DNA of 64,000 nucleotides from Phaeosaccion multiseriatum (taxonomy: Eukaryota > Protista > Ochrophyta, other classes), in the NCBI GenBank assembly GCA_965112735.1, contig OZ218951.1:5518001-5582000 (forward strand), given 5' to 3'. The first letter of the stretch is position 1, and every line of letters begins with the position of its first letter. The notes under the pieces were generated by a model that saw only the letters and a list, made by a program, of their open reading frames with translations, was not told where the DNA came from and made no database searches. Of the stretch, positions 666-15,392 are shown one piece after another. The translations under genes were made by a program, and so were the position numbers.

Positions 666-1988
666 TCAGGCCTGCCCCATGACGCGGGCCTCCTTCTGCC
701 TCAGGTCCTTGTCCTTGTCATCTGCTGCCATCGCAGACGAGGAGTCAGAGTCGCTCTCTATTTCGCCGTGCCCCCCCGTAGAGGAGAGGGGCGGCTCCTC
801 CGTAGCAACAGGAGCGGTAGTTGCAGAAGAAGGGAGCCCCGCTTCTATCCGTGGACGTTTCCTGCAGCCTGTCATGTTCGGCGAGATTTTGGGTCCTGCC
901 ACAAAAGCAGGAGTAGGAGTAGGAGTAGGAGTAGGAGCAGCAGCGGCAGCGGTAGAGGCGTGGCACGCAGCAGGGGCAGGGACTACAGCAGGAGCAACAG
1001 CAGCGGCGGCAGCGGCGTCGCGTGCGTCAGGGACAGCAGCTGCGGCTACCGGGAGTCGTGCGAGGCTGCTGCTGCTGCCGTGCCCGTTGGTCAGCCCGTT
1101 GGTCAGCCCGTTGGTCAGCCCGTTGGTCAGCCCGTTGGTAAGCCCATTGGTAAGCCCATTGGTAAGCCCGTTGGTCATACCCGGCCCCACCCCCCGCTTC
1201 ACCTCTGCCCACTCAGGGGAAGACACAGCTATCCGCCTGGGGGACAGAGGCAAAGACGAAGTCGGAGGCTTGGGCAGGGCCGGTGGCGCCGGGGTCAAGG
1301 GGGCGGGGCAGGGGAGGGGGTGGGTGCCCACTGCGGCCCCTCCGCCTCCTACGCCTCCCGCCAGGGGCTTGGCTTGCCTCTGACCCTGACCAATGCCCGT
1401 GCCCACACTGAGCGGCGGATTCTTCTTGGCAGGCACAGCAGCAAGCCTACTCGCAGAAGAAATAGAGGGAGAAGCCGGTCGGGAATTGCTCAGAAGAGGG
1501 GGCACACGCAGCAGGGACGGCAGCGGCAGCCCGCCGGGGCGCAAACTCGATGGCACTGCAGAAGGTATCGACGCGCTCATCACGTTGCACCTGGGCACGC
1601 TCGTTTCATGCTCCACACATAGCTCTCCAATCAGTGGGCGCTTGTCGCACCCTTCCACGATGCAGGCCGCCCAGGTGCCCTCGTGTTCATGCCTGAGGCA
1701 CAGCCCCCCTTGTCGGGCATCCCGCTTGCACTCCTCCACACTGCACCGCTTCCTCGCGCCTCCGTGGAGCAAGCACCGGCCCATATGCACCGCTCGCTTC
1801 TCGCAGCCCTCTGCGCTGCATGGGTACTTCTTTACCACCGCCCCATGCTTGATGCACAACCCCCCTTGCTGGACCTGCTTGTCGCACCCCTCCGCCTGGC
1901 ATCGCCTCCGTTGGCCCCCGTGCCTCATGCATGCTCCACCCTTCTTGGCGTACTTCTCACACCCCGGGTGCTTGCAGGTGCTGGGCAT
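666..1988 (-). CDS. WRKY19-like (C-x4-C...GG-x-C-x2-H) zinc-finger repeat protein, single exon
   Basis: The first in-frame ATG is at 1988 (the track start at 2048 is TTG). There are five repeats such as CKHPGCEKYAKKGGACMRHGG, CQAEGCDKQVQQGGLCIKHG and CSAEGCEKRAVHMGRCLLHGG, followed by a low-complexity tail with an NLS-like RKRPR. TGA is at 666-668. Confidence 0.8.
   Translation of the reverse strand: MPSTCKHPGCEKYAKKGGACMRHGGQRRRCQAEGCDKQVQQGGLCIKHGAVVKKYPCSAEGCEKRAVHMGRCLLHGGARKRCSVEECKRDARQGGLCLRHEHEGTWAACIVEGCDKRPLIGELCVEHETSVPRCNVMSASIPSAVPSSLRPGGLPLPSLLRVPPLLSNSRPASPSISSASRLAAVPAKKNPPLSVGTGIGQGQRQAKPLAGGVGGGGAAVGTHPLPCPAPLTPAPPALPKPPTSSLPLSPRRIAVSSPEWAEVKRGVGPGMTNGLTNGLTNGLTNGLTNGLTNGLTNGLTNGHGSSSSLARLPVAAAAVPDARDAAAAAAVAPAVVPAPAACHASTAAAAAPTPTPTPTPAFVAGPKISPNMTGCRKRPRIEAGLPSSATTAPVATEEPPLSSTGGHGEIESDSDSSSAMAADDKDKDLRQKEARVMGQA
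1083..1176 (-). repeat. Coding 12-bp tandem repeat encoding (TNGL)x8
   Basis: Units gcccgttggtca / gcccattggtaa lie in frame within the zinc-finger ORF. Confidence 0.9.
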
Positions 1989-2523
1989 CTCTGCTCCACC
2001 TTCCAAAGAGCTTGCTGATATGAGAGTATTGCCTTCCCCAAAGCCCAAGCGCTGTGTGTGAACCCTCTCCTCCCTCTTTTCTCCTCCAGGCTGCTGCTTC
2101 CACGACTGCGGGTGCTGGTGCTACTTCTGAGGCTTAGAAGACAGGCCAGGCAGTGATAGCATTGGGATTAGAGCAGATCACAGCAGGAGTGGGGAGGAGC
2201 GGTGGGCGGAAGGGAAAGGAGGTGCCCTTTTTGTTAAGGGTGGAAGCTCAGAAAAGGGAATGCTGCAAAAGGTTGGAGCGACATCCCCAACCCCGCTGTC
2301 CCACTGCTGCCGGTCTCACCTGTCTTTGTCCTTCGATGGTGCGATGTCCGCTTAAACCCTCTCTCCTCTCTTCATAACTTTGTGCCACAGCGCTCTCTCT
2401 CTTGAGAAGGGGAGAGGATCGGGAGAGGGTTCAGGCCCACCCGGGGGGTGCCTTCGGCCTAATAGTAATATCGATGTCTCTATTTTCAGGCTCGCGGTGG
2501 CGCATAAATCAAAATAGCTGGTA

Positions 2524-3267: not shown

Positions 3268-4833
3268 TTAGGGTGAAGCAGCAGCAGCAGCCAGGAGGGC
3301 CGCCGCTTCCGTCTCTCTCTGATAGCGGGCCTTGTCCTCAAGAGCAAGGGCATCGTACCGGGCAGACTCCTCTGGGGACATTGCTCTGTAGGGACAGTGC
3401 CGGTCGACAAGAGAGAGAGAGAGAGGGGGGGGGGGGAGCGGGAGGGGAGCGGGAGGGGAGCGGGAGGGAGTGGAAGGGAGTGGAAGGATGGGGGGTAGAG
3501 GGGCAAGAGGAGGGGCAGGGGCAGGCATATCGGCAGGGGCAGGCATATGGGCAGGGGCCATGACAAGCGTCAGAGGTTGTTGTCACAAGCGGGATGGAAG
3601 GAAGAGGGGAACAGAGGGGAGGGAGAGAGATGGGAAGAGGAAGATGGGGAAGGGAGAAATAGAGAGACAGGAAGGAAGGAAGGAAGGAAGGAAGGAAGGG
3701 AGGGAGGGAGGGAGGGAGGGGGACGGAGAAACAGAGAGGAGGAGATAGGGAGGGAGGGTAAGAGAGACAGAGGAAGAGGGAGGGAACAGAGGGAGAGAGA
3801 GAGAGCGCGAGGGGCCGAGGGAGAGGAACAGCGAGATAGTAGAGGGAGGGAGCAAGGGGGGCAGAGTAGAGAGAGAGCGTGGGGGAGAGCGAGAGAAGAG
3901 AGGGGGGGAGGGAGAGTACAGAGAGAGGGAGCGAGCGAGAGAAGAGAGGGGAGACGAGCGACGGATCGTCGAGACTGAAACACAACATCCTCACTCCCTC
4001 ACTCACTCACTCACTCCCTCACTCACTCACTCACTCACTCACTCACTCACCCACTCACTCACCCACTCACTCACTCACTCCCTCACTCACTCCCTCACTC
4101 ACTCACTCACTCACTCACTCACCCACTCACTCACTCACCCACTCACTCACTCACCCACTCACTCACTCACTCACTCACTCACCCACTCACTCACTCACTC
4201 ACTCTCTCACTCACTCACTCACTCACTCACTCACTCCCTCACTCACCCACTCACTCACTCACTCCCTCACTCACTCCCTCACTCACTCACTCACTCACTC
4301 ACTCCCTCACTCACTCACTCCCTCACTCCCTCACTCACTCACTCACTCACTCACTCACTCCCTCACTCACTCACTCACTCCCTCACTCACTCACTCACTC
4401 ACTCACTCACTCACTCCCTCACTCACTCACTCCCTCACTCACTCACTCACTCACTCACTCACTCACTCACTCACTCCCTCACTCACTCACTCACTCACTC
4501 ACTCCCTCACTCACTCACTCACTCACTCACTCACTCCCTCACTCACTCACTCACTCCCTCACTCACTCACTCACTCACTCACTCCCTCACTCACTCACTC
4601 ACTCACTCACTCACTTGTACAGTGCGGAGAGGTCCTTAAAAGTAATGGATCCGCCGCCCTCCGCGCTGTCTTTCCGCTTGTCGCTGCAGAACAGGATGAA
4701 GCGGTTGCGCGGCTTGAGCGGCCCCCCAGCCGTAGCACCAACAGCTGCCCCTGCGCTGCCCTTCCGCTTCTTCCTGCTGCTACTACTACCACTATTACTA
4801 CTACTTCTACTACTACTCCTACTTCTACTACTC

Positions 4834-4874
<41 letters not shown>

Positions 4875-6147
4875 GCCCTCCTCCAGCTTCGCTTTGTACT
4901 CTGCCTTAAGCCTGTCTGCATCGTCTTCGAAGGGCCTCTTTTCCTCCTCACTCGCCTCCTTCCACATCTGCGCCACCACAGCCATCGCCCCCGGCCCCTT
5001 CTTTGCCTCAGTCGCTGCCGCCCTACTCTGTGCCTCTGCGAAGTTGGCCTTGACGAAGAGAATGTAGGCGCTAGGGGGCCGCTTGACCCCCTCCCTATCA
5101 TCACCCTCCTTGCCCTTGGCCTTGGCCTTGGCCTTGCCCTTGCCCTTGGCCTTGGTGGTCGTTGCCTTTCCCTTCTTCTTCTTCTTCTTTGCAGAAGGGT
5201 CCTTCGCAGCCGCTTCGTTAATCGCCTCTATGGGTGTGTGTGTGCGTGTTATGTGTGTGTGTGAGTGTGCGTGAGAGAGAGTGAGTGTGTGTGGGTGGGT
5301 GTGTTGGAGAGGAGGTGGGGATGATGTGTCAGTGTCTCCCTTCCTCCCGCCCCCCGTCCTTCCATCCCTCCCTCCTCCCTCCTCCCTTCCTCCTCCCCTC
5401 CCTCCCTCCCTCCCTCCCTCCCTCCCTCCCTCCTCCCTAAGTACCCACCTATTGCCTCCTCCAAGGAGCACGCCCCGGGGTCGTCCTTATACTGCTTGGG
5501 TAGCTTGCCCTTTAGAGACCCACACTTGATAAAGAATCCCCACCTGCCCTTTGTGGCCCACACTGCCTCCCCCTCGTACTCCCCCAAATGGTGCCCGAGC
5601 TTCTCTCGGATCGCGTCGGCGTACTCGATGGCAGTGGATGGCGTCATGGTGTACACGTCGTCCGGCTCCTTGATGCTCTTGAAGGCACCCAAGTACCTCA
5701 CAAATGGCCCGAATCGGCCCTGACCTGTTGGTTGTATACACACACGTTGCGTTGTTGCGAGTGTTAGTCATGCATGGACAAGAGAAGAGGGAGGGAGGGG
5801 AGGGGGGGGGAGGGGAGGGAGGCGGAGGCTTTCGGCTTCCGCGTACTGCACAGATGGACACACGCACACACACACGCACCCATTGACCTACCTACCACCA
5901 CTTCCTACCCCCCACCCGCACGCACATAGACTACCATCCCCTCACCCATTGACATACCTAGCACCACCTCCTCCCCTGTGTCGGGATGCAAGGCCACGAC
6001 CTTGGGGAACGCTAGCAAGTCCAGCGCCTGAGAGAGAGAGCGTTAAGACAGACAGAGAGAGAGAGCGTTAAGACAGACAGAGAGAGGGCGTTAAGACAGA
6101 CAGAGAGAGAGAGAGCGTTAAGACAGACAGAGAGAGAGAGAGCGTTA

Positions 6148-12449: not shown

Positions 12450-13311
12450 GGGTACGGGGAGGGGGCAGGTGCGGGGGAGACATGTTAGACGCACGCACGC
12501 ACGCATGGTTGTTTACCCACTACCCCCTCTACCCCCTCTACCCCCTCTGCACACTACACTGTCCTGCGCTCGCAACACAACACAACACAACATCCTACTT
12601 GCCTGCTGACGTTGGCGGTGACGTCACTGTACCCACTACTTGCTACCCCCCACCCCCTCCCCAACGCCCTCCTTGTACTTGCCTGCTGACGTTGGCAGTG
12701 ACGTCACTGTAATTGGCTCTCACGAACTCCATCCTGCGTATCTCCCTGTCCACAACGAGCTTTAGCCCCGCACTCTGCACCCTTCCTGCGCTGAGGCCCC
12801 TCCCAATCTTCTTCCACAGCAAAGGGCTCATGGTGTAACCGGCGAGGCGGTCAAGTACACGCCGTGCTTCCTGCAGGGGGGGGAGAGGGTGGGGAGGGAC
12901 GGTGAGTAGGACATGCAAATCCACGCACACGACACGTACACACCCACTCACCCACACCCACACACACACACACCCCTACACACCCACACATACCCACACA
13001 CACCCCTACACACCCACACATACCCCACCCACATACCCACACACACCCCTACACACCCACACATACCCCTACACACCCACACATACCCCACCCACACACC
13101 AACCCACTCACCCACACGCACCACCCACCCACACACACATACACACACCCACACCCACACATACCCCACACCCACACACACACACCCGTACACACCCACA
13201 CCAACTCACCCACCCATCCACTCACCCACACCCACACACCCACACACATACCCCACACACACACACACACCCACACACCAACCCACCCACACACCAACCC
13301 ACCCACCCACT

Positions 13312-13485: not shown

Positions 13486-15392
13486 CCCCCCCCCCCCCCT
13501 ACCTGTGCCTGCACAAGATCGTGGTCGATGCCCCTCGCCTCCTGAAACGCCCGTGTGATGGCCGCCTCAGTGATCTCGTGAAACACTGCCCTCTTTACCG
13601 GCACCTGCGGTTTCAGTTTCAGTGTCTGTGTCAGTTTACTCGCCCTACCAATCAGTTAAGGTCATTGGTTAAGGTCTAATGAACAAAACAGAGCTGAACA
13701 GATCGATATCGATATCGACATCGACATCGAAAATCGATATCGAATTCTCATTCGTCTCAGTGGTGAGCCAACTCCCTCCCCTCCCTCCCCTGACCTTGGG
13801 CTGCAAGACTTCCATGAGATGCCAGCTGATGGCCTCTCCCTCCCTGTCCTCATCGGTGGCCAGCACGATGCTGTCGGCTTCCTTCACGCCCTTGCGCAGA
13901 CGGGCGATGGTCTTGCTCTTGCCAGACATCTGCCATGGGGTATTGGGCATCGGGCATCAGTTTTGGGGTATTAGGTATTGGGTATATTCGAATTCAAGAT
14001 TACGTAAACCAATGAGATAAGCAAGCGACCGGGCACAGGTATCAGGTATTGGGGTACAAGGTATTGGGTATTGGGGGTACTCCTCTCCCCTTCTTTGCTC
14101 GCTTTCTTCTGCCCTTCCCTTCTCTCCTCTGCCCTCTCCCCCCCCTCCGTTCTCCCTCCCTCTCACCGTCACATAGAGCGGTTTAAAGTCGTTCTGCACA
14201 TCGACACCCAATGAGGCCCACTTCTCCTTCTTGAGCTCCTTGGGCACCTTTGAAGCGTTGGCGGGAAGGTCTCTGATGTGGCCTTCGCAACTGTCCACCT
14301 GGGGGATGGAGGAAGAGGAGGGAGGGAGGGAGGGAAGGGAAGGGACAATGTGAGGGAGAGAAGCACGAAGCACGAGGGGGTGACGGGGAGGGAGGGAGGG
14401 ATGGGTGAGCGGGAGGGAGGGATGGAGGGGAGAGGAGGGTAGGGTTGGGAAGAGAGGGCGGACAAGGGCAGAGGAGGAGAGGGAGGGAGATTCACATTAC
14501 ACACAGATTGAGGCAGTCCTCTGACTCATTCTATCCACTCCGGCGACTCAGTCCTGGCGGCATTGAGCTGTGAGCGTGAGAGTGCTTCGGTGGCACCAAG
14601 CTGGGAGAGAGACACGCATTCGGACTCTGGTCTAGGGTATTGGTCTCTCTCTCCCTCGTCGCTCCCTCACTACCTCTCTCTCTCTCTTGCCTCTCTCTCT
14701 CCACCTCTCTCTCTCCTTCTCTCTCTGTCTCCTTTTCGCCTAACATTCCTCTCTTACGCCGTACTTCCGTATTGACAATACAGTGGTCCTCCCTATACTG
14801 ACTCACTCACTCACTCACTCACTCACTCACTGGCTGACTGAATCACTGTCTCACTGACTGACTGAGTGACTGAGTGTGACTGATTGAGTGACTCACTCAC
14901 TCACACTCCCCCTCTTACCTTGTAAATCAGGCCCTTCGGGGCGGTCCTTGCGAGGAACTTGCTGATAGTCCTCGCCTTTGCAGGGCTCTCCACAATCACC
15001 AGGCTGACGAGAGGGCCGGCCTTGGCCTTGGCCTTTGCCTTTGCCTTGGACTTTGCCTTCTTCGCGGTGACCCCTCCTGCTTCTCCTCCTCCTGCCGCAT
15101 CACTTTGCGCCTGCCGCCCCAGAGTGGTGAAGCACGAGGAGCAAGCCCCGGAAGAAGGCAACGTCCTCCTCAGGCTCAGCGCTCGATAGGTGGTCTGCCT
15201 CCTCCCTGCATTGAGGAGAAGAGACGTGCGCAGGGCCATGCCTGGGTCTGCCCAGGCGAGGAGCAGCAGCGGCACGAGTGTCACCTCCAGCAACGGCCGC
15301 CACCGCCGCCGCCACCGCCTCCCCGACGAGACCCGAGCACCCTGCTGCTGCTGATGCTGCTGTTGCTGCTCCTGCTGAGGACTGCCAGCCAT
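3268..15392 (-). CDS. topA: Bacterial-type DNA topoisomerase IA (probably organellar) with topoisomerase C-terminal repeats and two C-terminal HMG boxes; 18 exons
   Basis: Exons: 15392-14919, 14298-14167, 13929-13795, 13604-13503, 12870-12683, 12373-12268, 12011-11797, 10863-10725, 10414-10216, 9929-9829, 9563-9357, 8773-8630, 8264-8112, 7694-7161, 6027-5958, 5724-5449, 5227-4615, 3385-3268. Motifs: [45 protein letters not shown], catalytic [35 protein letters not shown] repeats. HMG boxes: [12 protein letters not shown]...[12 protein letters not shown] and [11 protein letters not shown]...[21 protein letters not shown]. Splice phases are compatible throughout. Confidence 0.9.
3990..4614. repeat. 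(TCAC)n microsatellite in the last topA intron
   Basis: About 620 bp of tcac/tccc units. Confidence 0.95.
6029..7040. repeat. Compound (GA)n/(GACA)n microsatellite with recurring GCGTTAAGACAGAC and GCAAGTGGGA interruptions (topA intron)
   Basis: Seen directly in the sequence. Confidence 0.9.

Follow-up and report, generated by a model that had tools for sequence, protein, structure and literature searches.

In a 64,000-nucleotide stretch of the Phaeosaccion multiseriatum genome (contig OZ218951.1, positions 5,518,001 to 5,582,000), hereafter the window, whose positions serve as coordinates throughout, one nuclear gene on the minus strand probably encodes an organelle-directed, bacterial-type topoisomerase I whose C-terminus continues into a basic linker and two HMG boxes, acting as a module that anchors and targets the enzyme to duplex DNA. 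The original prediction, made from this DNA alone, had proposed a topoisomerase IA joined in frame to tandem HMG boxes, and this junction is borne out by an intact frame of 18 exons, by Pfam domains on both of its sides and by colinear homologues in which the same segments are continuous.

The gene runs from 15392 to 3268 (Table 1), with splice sites read by eye in a GC-rich eukaryotic DNA (57-63% GC) whose introns are packed with microsatellites. Its exons add up to 3,891 nucleotides, that is 1,296 codons and a stop, and the phases agree at all junctions so that the frame stays intact. All introns are of the GT-AG type save the one at 7160-6028, for which we accept a GC donor because no other donor keeps the frame into exon 15; homologues are colinear across it. 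For the two introns that matter most here (5448-5228 and 4614-3386), the coordinates, phases and GT-AG borders given in the original prediction all hold on the minus strand, the only amendment being a small one upstream, where the short exon starting at 6027 ends at 5958. Searches with this gene were run exon by exon, the protein being searched as exon pieces, and the scores given below are to be read in that way.

The enzyme part has the features of a bacterial-type topoisomerase I that looks active. Reading the sequence, we find the Toprim glutamate in IVESPAKA (codon 14990-14988) and the DxD motif in ATDEDREGE (13854-13846), and the Toprim exons align by tblastn to the Toprim region of the homologues P0179 and P0169; the match of exon 1 falls on residues 13-29 of P0179, while exons 2-5, which hold the remainder of Toprim and the beginning of Topoisom_bac, are 53-70% identical to P0169, P0179 and P0181, the protein of Tribonema minus. 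The Topoisom_bac core in exons 6-13 is placed by Pfam (PF01131 matches three exon pieces, the best at 1e-13), by tblastn and by reading of the sequence, with the catalytic tyrosine (codon 10841-10839) within a motif of the G-x-I-T-Y-M-R-T-D type. Further on, Pfam finds Toprim_C_rpt (PF13368) at 7.7e-11 on 7691-7152 and, in two stretches, at 1.7e-14 on 5722-5450. Searched against solved structures, the last Topo_C_Rpt exon had no match.

Two tandem HMG boxes follow, as seen both with Pfam and with a family-specific model that we built from the HMG boxes of TopA-HMG proteins. The first HMG box, predicted to follow a phase-1 joint and a lysine-rich linker, is confirmed by the exon 17 piece, which matches HMG_box (PF00505) on 5225-4617 at 2.2e-14 over profile positions 1-65 of 69, its 54.1 bits lying above the cut-off of 25.4; the family model finds the same box at 6e-25, and its nearest relatives of solved structure are the boxes of HMGB1/2. 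The second box is divided between two exons. Exon 18 alone covers positions 41-66 of the HMG_box profile with an E-value of 0.019, under the Pfam cut-off, whereas the family model recovers both halves, positions 3-25 at the end of exon 17 (3e-4) and positions 40-65 in exon 18 (8e-6). Scored separately, the halves appear to be complementary parts of one HMG model, and they are colinear with the single boxes of P0179 and P0181. As had been predicted, the HMG part lacks a separate start, because no ATG stands in frame from 5471 to halfway through box 1. When the HMG exon served by itself as the query of a word search, only three ordinary HMG proteins of about 280 residues came back, the length window of that search excluding full-length fusions.

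Support for the two splice junctions is comparative because RNA gave nothing usable, yet, judged from colinearity with continuous homologues, it is strong. At the first junction, where the window reads SLEEAI/E/... (slashes here mark boundaries), the homologues read through, P0179 as PLADAIEAILAKADQDP, Guillardia as TLEEAIESIKLKS and P0169 as PLAEAIQAIQAKA, with the motifs LEEAIE-SI, LADAIEAI or LAEAIQAI uninterrupted. Against P0179, residues 880-909, 910 and 911-927 follow each other in order and without gaps, the split codon yielding the same glutamate (E910), and the helix that closes the last Topo_C_Rpt runs on across the junction exactly as it does in the continuous homologues. At the second junction, the end of exon 17 corresponds to residues 1070-1109 of P0179 and exon 18 continues from 1111, with 67% identity to the extreme C-terminus of Tribonema minus P0181. 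The fusion is also found in P0042, a single uninterrupted open reading frame of 1,120 codons on a 17.7-kb contig, and in P0005 (Guillardia theta, UniRef A0A7S4L2Z8), which shares 335 of 350 residues with the truncated model P0012 in their overlap and then goes on into two HMG boxes. Judging from the style of its accession, P0005 is presumably derived from a transcriptome.

The fusion is not peculiar to Phaeosaccion. Our survey, which combined a library-wide search with exon 16 (160 matches), two word searches from a full-length member and Pfam scans, found at least 20 public protein clusters in which Toprim, Topoisom_bac, Toprim_C_rpt and HMG_box occur together, with one to four HMG boxes. The named holders are Tribonema minus P0181 (NCBI, annotated as 'DNA topoisomerase'), Amphora coffeaeformis P0304 (EukProt), Guillardia theta P0005 (UniRef) and Pedinophyceae sp. 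YPF-701 P0308 (NCBI), and the same domains are present in P0179, P0184, P0298-P0306 and others, so that the groups concerned are diatoms, yellow-green algae (a xanthophyte), cryptophytes, one green alga and unnamed marine eukaryotes. In the Tribonema, Amphora and Guillardia proteins, Toprim, Topoisom_bac, Topo_C_Rpt, basic linker and HMG boxes stand in the same order as in the window gene, LEEAI-E-AI recurs at the junction, and identity to the last HMG box of the window gene reaches 67%. The algal fusion proteins differ from the window gene in their core, to which identity is about 45-70%, and in the number of boxes: according to the family model there are two in Tribonema and the cryptophyte-like members, as here, and three or four in the diatom-like branch. 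In the deposited model of P0181 the topoisomerase is preceded, at residues 1-304, by Rpn13 with its Pru and UCH-binding domains, probably a neighbouring gene that the gene caller merged, masking the true N-terminus. In P0169, the second HMG box is split by two introns that the gene caller overlooked (L003 5100-5620), one of which lies 2-3 codons away from the site at which the last intron interrupts the window gene (between ...KKLSA and MWGGLEDGE).

In a quick maximum-likelihood analysis of the catalytic core, whose sample did not comprise the window gene, 13 HMG-bearing proteins form one clade together with the genome models of Chrysoparadoxa and Guillardia that lack HMG boxes (Shimodaira-Hasegawa-like approximate likelihood ratio support of 100). 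The pedinophyte protein P0308, which has a zinc-ribbon C-terminal domain and two HMG boxes at its end, lies outside this main clade on a long branch, and because it branches apart, its sequence suggests a second, independent fusion in the pedinophyte lineage. For the window gene itself, bit scores summed over exons rank Tribonema minus, Chrysoparadoxa australica, P0179 and Guillardia on top, with bacterial sequences close behind. The donor lineage cannot be read from the tree because bacterial sampling is biased: the sample is without red-algal, plant or wide cyanobacterial sequences, and we rejected the Balneolales-like bacteria that appear as sister group as a donor, their rows having been picked by similarity to one query. 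In the branch with bacterial-type TopA, P0032 and P0311 carry a histone-H1-like (HC2) lysine-rich tail after the Topo_C_Rpt repeats.

Where the enzyme works is suggested by its N-terminus and by those of its relatives. The window protein begins with an extension of about 130 residues that looks like an organelle-targeting sequence: rich in Gln at first, it passes through a cluster of Arg and a hydrophobic segment into a region rich in Arg, Ser and Thr, whose first residue is a second in-frame methionine (15239-15237). In ochrophytes, a signal followed by phenylalanine, the so-called ASAFAP rule, marks plastid proteins. N-termini of this signal-plus-Phe kind are found in Chrysoparadoxa (...QFTLG/F), P0298 (...IFASA/FSLLP), P0299 (...HLASA/FTRPP) and P0300 (...VTG/FVP). 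Elsewhere, type IA TOP1 has been placed in the plastid of a red alga and, in Arabidopsis, in plastid and mitochondrion alike (PMC4166229). We infer from these signals that the protein would reside in the complex plastid, and possibly in the mitochondrion as well by dual targeting, for which alternative initiation could be responsible. The peptide that starts at the second methionine resembles a mitochondrial presequence. Upstream, an ATG in another frame (15400-15398) begins a reading frame of about 38 codons, which runs over the main start at 15392 and stops about 50 nucleotides short of the second methionine.

Type IA topoisomerases relax negative supercoils by single-strand passage, and they vary chiefly in their C-terminal DNA-binding tails, which set processivity and the choice of partners. 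HMG boxes of the HMGB type, for their part, attach to the minor groove of duplex DNA whatever its sequence, preferring bent, crossed or underwound DNA. The Topo_C_Rpt repeats are reported to bind the passing single strand (PMC7192597), and the processivity of Streptomyces TopA comes from lysine repeats that stabilise the enzyme-DNA complex (PMC5714199). We therefore propose that the N-terminal domains of the window protein would nick and pass single strands, relaxing negative supercoils, while the Topo_C_Rpt repeats would grip the passing strand. The HMG boxes would fasten the enzyme to the nucleoid of the organelle, direct it towards strained DNA and make it more processive, and some bending or bridging of DNA at the spot would come as a side effect, not as bulk packaging. 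A role in tethering, targeting or processivity is favoured because HMG boxes bind distorted duplex and TopA tails raise processivity.

Several points weigh against this proposal. It builds on the observed domains and their order. That HMG box 2 is completed across the phase-2 intron is probable from its complementary halves, each scored separately, and from their colinearity with P0179 and P0181. The sequencing runs labelled as RNA (10-13% of words) touch only the low-complexity stretch 5784-5828 and bring no transcript support for the window gene. The sole run that truly matches the gene region is genomic DNA, since its unitigs run through the borders of exons and introns with no change in depth, and the (GTGA)n array was kept out of this run comparison, so that the joint of the second junction is not visible there. 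If the intron at either junction were retained, the protein would lack complete HMG boxes, and such isoforms are possible. As to location, the presequence shows no clear Ala-x-Ala/Phe motif, and the N-termini of the Amphora pair, two diatom relatives, look mitochondrial. The lack of transcript matches would fit the view that the HMG exons form a gene of their own downstream, or are used in a minor isoform, the joined model then being an artefact of prediction, and so would the length and repeat content of the last intron, the stops encountered on read-through of both donors (an immediate TGA, LYK-stop, at 4614-4612 when intron 17 is left unspliced, and, past the donor of exon 16, a stop in the frame of the topoisomerase near 5249) and the models P0012 of Guillardia and P0004 of Chrysoparadoxa, which end before any HMG box. 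Both of these models, however, are marked partial; moreover, box 1 has no in-frame ATG upstream, the Topo_C_Rpt helix crosses the first junction as in the continuous homologues, and the fusion is held by intron-free reading frames and by the Guillardia UniRef entry. We consider this explanation very unlikely.

The atypical presequence, whose long beginning is rich in Gln and whose hydrophobic stretch is not followed by Phe, could also mean that the N-terminal extension is no organelle signal and that the enzyme acts in the nucleus, or in the nucleomorph compartment of cryptophytes, its HMG boxes contacting chromatin. HMG boxes and KKRK-type basic runs are indeed typical of nuclear proteins, and among solved structures box 1 comes closest to the nuclear HMGB1/2. 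Yet all type IA TOP1 enzymes of the bacterial kind whose location has been determined are organellar (PMC4166229), eukaryotic nuclei rely on type IA enzymes of the Top3 kind (PMC9369019) and relatives of the window protein have clear signal-plus-Phe or mitochondrial-like presequences, all of which makes a nuclear enzyme extremely unlikely. A more serious contender, the one put forward in the original prediction, accepts both the fusion and the organelle and sees in the protein a dual-function nucleoid component, whose HMG boxes compact organellar DNA while the same molecule relaxes the resulting supercoils. A tandem HMG pair is the hallmark of TFAM, Abf2 and Glom and of the chloroplast nucleoid protein HBD1 (PMC8157925), the growth to three or four boxes in the diatom branch reads more easily as organisation of DNA than as plain tethering, and the basic linker would contribute further DNA affinity. 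Packaging proteins are nevertheless small and very abundant, unlike an enzyme of some 1,296 residues, and proteins of the HU type are already present in red-lineage plastids (PMC8157925), so that we find this alternative rather unlikely. An enzyme of 1,296 residues is an improbable bulk packager, and the role in anchoring, targeting or processivity proposed above fits the known C-terminal add-ons of TopA better.

These add-ons provide the nearest precedents. The TopA of Streptomyces and Mycobacterium with lysine repeats, that of Chlamydia with a SWIB domain (PMC12445093) and those with HC2 tails all share with the window gene the design of a type IA core with Topo_C_Rpt repeats and an added basic or chromatin-type module, the HC2 tails of P0032 and P0311 being a bacterial parallel in which a chromatin-type DNA binder has been added to TopA. 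The window gene is unlike them in that its module is a eukaryotic HMG pair that binds and bends duplex DNA, and in that its host is a eukaryote. Arabidopsis AT4G31210 and Cyanidioschyzon CMI252C are likewise nuclear-encoded homologues of TopA imported into plastids, mitochondria or both (PMC4166229), with no HMG boxes reported, going by their descriptions and not by a comparison of sequences. With TFAM, Abf2 and Glom of mitochondria and HBD1 of the Chlamydomonas chloroplast (PMC8157925), the window gene has in common two tandem HMG boxes and a presumed association with organellar DNA, but those proteins are small, abundant and stand-alone, without an enzyme, whereas here the boxes are the tail of one; besides, box 1 is closest to HMGB1/2 and shows no specific kinship with TFAM or HBD1. 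The architecture, of which the original prediction knew no described example, has turned out to be common and apparently uncharacterised: the same fusion occurs in Tribonema minus, Amphora coffeaeformis, Guillardia theta and a pedinophyte, as well as in many unnamed marine eukaryotes, but no TopA-HMG fusion is described in the literature searched on topoisomerase or Toprim with HMG and on plastid nucleoids with HMG boxes, in a 2022 review of TopA C-terminal domains or in reviews of organellar replication enzymes. Going by the sequences, the fusions are public but unstudied, and the window gene appears to be one further member of a conserved algal group.

To our knowledge, almost nothing is known of how organellar DNA is supercoiled and organised outside plants, green algae and animals. 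An HMG-box tail conserved across several major algal groups, the ecologically dominant diatoms included, offers a handle on how these algae manage both processes, and a natural test of whether duplex-bending modules alter an enzyme of single-strand passage. As the family has a member in transformable diatoms, the question is experimentally accessible. A bolder idea, which we think unlikely, is that in algae with red-derived complex plastids the topoisomerase with two to four HMG boxes would be the main nucleoid HMG protein, shaping and relaxing plastid or mitochondrial DNA, and that it evolved at least twice, in the main clade and in the pedinophyte. If true, a eukaryotic chromatin module would be at work within a bacterial-type nucleoid.

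Table 1. Exons of the topoisomerase-HMG gene, and three of its introns, in the order of transcription.
Feature	Position	Strand	Content and basis
Exon 1	15392-14919	-	Start codon 15392-15390; N-terminal extension of about 130 residues, then Toprim start; Glu codon 14990-14988
Exon 2	14298-14167	-	Splice sites by eye, tblastn
Exon 3	13929-13795	-	Splice sites by eye, tblastn; holds DxD codons 13854-13846
Exon 4	13604-13503	-	Splice sites by eye, tblastn
Exon 5	12870-12679 (or -12691)	-	Splice sites by eye, tblastn
Exon 6	12354-12268	-	Topoisom_bac core
Exon 7	12011-11797	-	Topoisom_bac core
Exon 8	10863-10725	-	Topoisom_bac core; catalytic Tyr codon 10841-10839
Exon 9	10414-10216	-	Topoisom_bac core
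Exon 10	9929-9829	-	Topoisom_bac core
Exon 11	9563-9357	-	Topoisom_bac core
Exon 12	8773-8630	-	Topoisom_bac core
Exon 13	8264-8112	-	Topoisom_bac core
Exon 14	7694-7161	-	C-terminal domain start; Lys/Glu/Gly-rich low-complexity insert; one Topo_C_Rpt repeat; GC donor CAG/GCAAGT
Intron 14	7160-6028	-	GC-AG (CAG/GCAAGT ... CAG); 1,133 nucleotides; (GA)n and (AGAC)n arrays
Exon 15	6027-5958	-	Ends plus G, phase 1; aligns to P0169 residues 1018-1034
Exon 16	5724-5449	-	Final two Topo_C_Rpt repeats; ends ...CSLEEAI plus G, phase 1
Intron 16	5448-5228	-	GT-AG, phase 1; 221 nucleotides; (GGGA)n-like array; joins topoisomerase to HMG part
Exon 17	5227-4615	-	Lys/Ala-rich linker; HMG box 1 (exon residues 47-116); Ser/Arg-rich run; KKRK; N-terminal half of box 2; ends ...LSALY plus AA
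Intron 17	4614-3386	-	GT-AG, phase 2; 1,229 nucleotides, about half of them a 626-bp (GTGA)n microsatellite (3990-4615)
Exon 18	3385-3268	-	C-terminal half of box 2; short Ala-rich tail; TAA stop 3270-3268

The alternative ends listed for exon 5 reflect two GT donors, at 12690 and 12678, each of which preserves the frame; a GC donor closing this exon (CAG/GCAAGT, 12683/12682) was rejected, the frame into exon 6 being broken by it. About 25 nucleotides of the exon 5 end and donor region (ACAGTGACGTCACTGCCAACGTCAGCAGGCAAGTA) recur with one mismatch some 80 nucleotides downstream in the intron (12710-12590, minus strand), and this repeat is a duplicated splice-donor region. Downstream of the gene, the next open reading frame (666-2048, minus strand) encodes many Cys-rich repeats of the form C-x3-GC-x-K-x-A-x3-G-x-C-x2-HGG, together with a (TNGL)n run.

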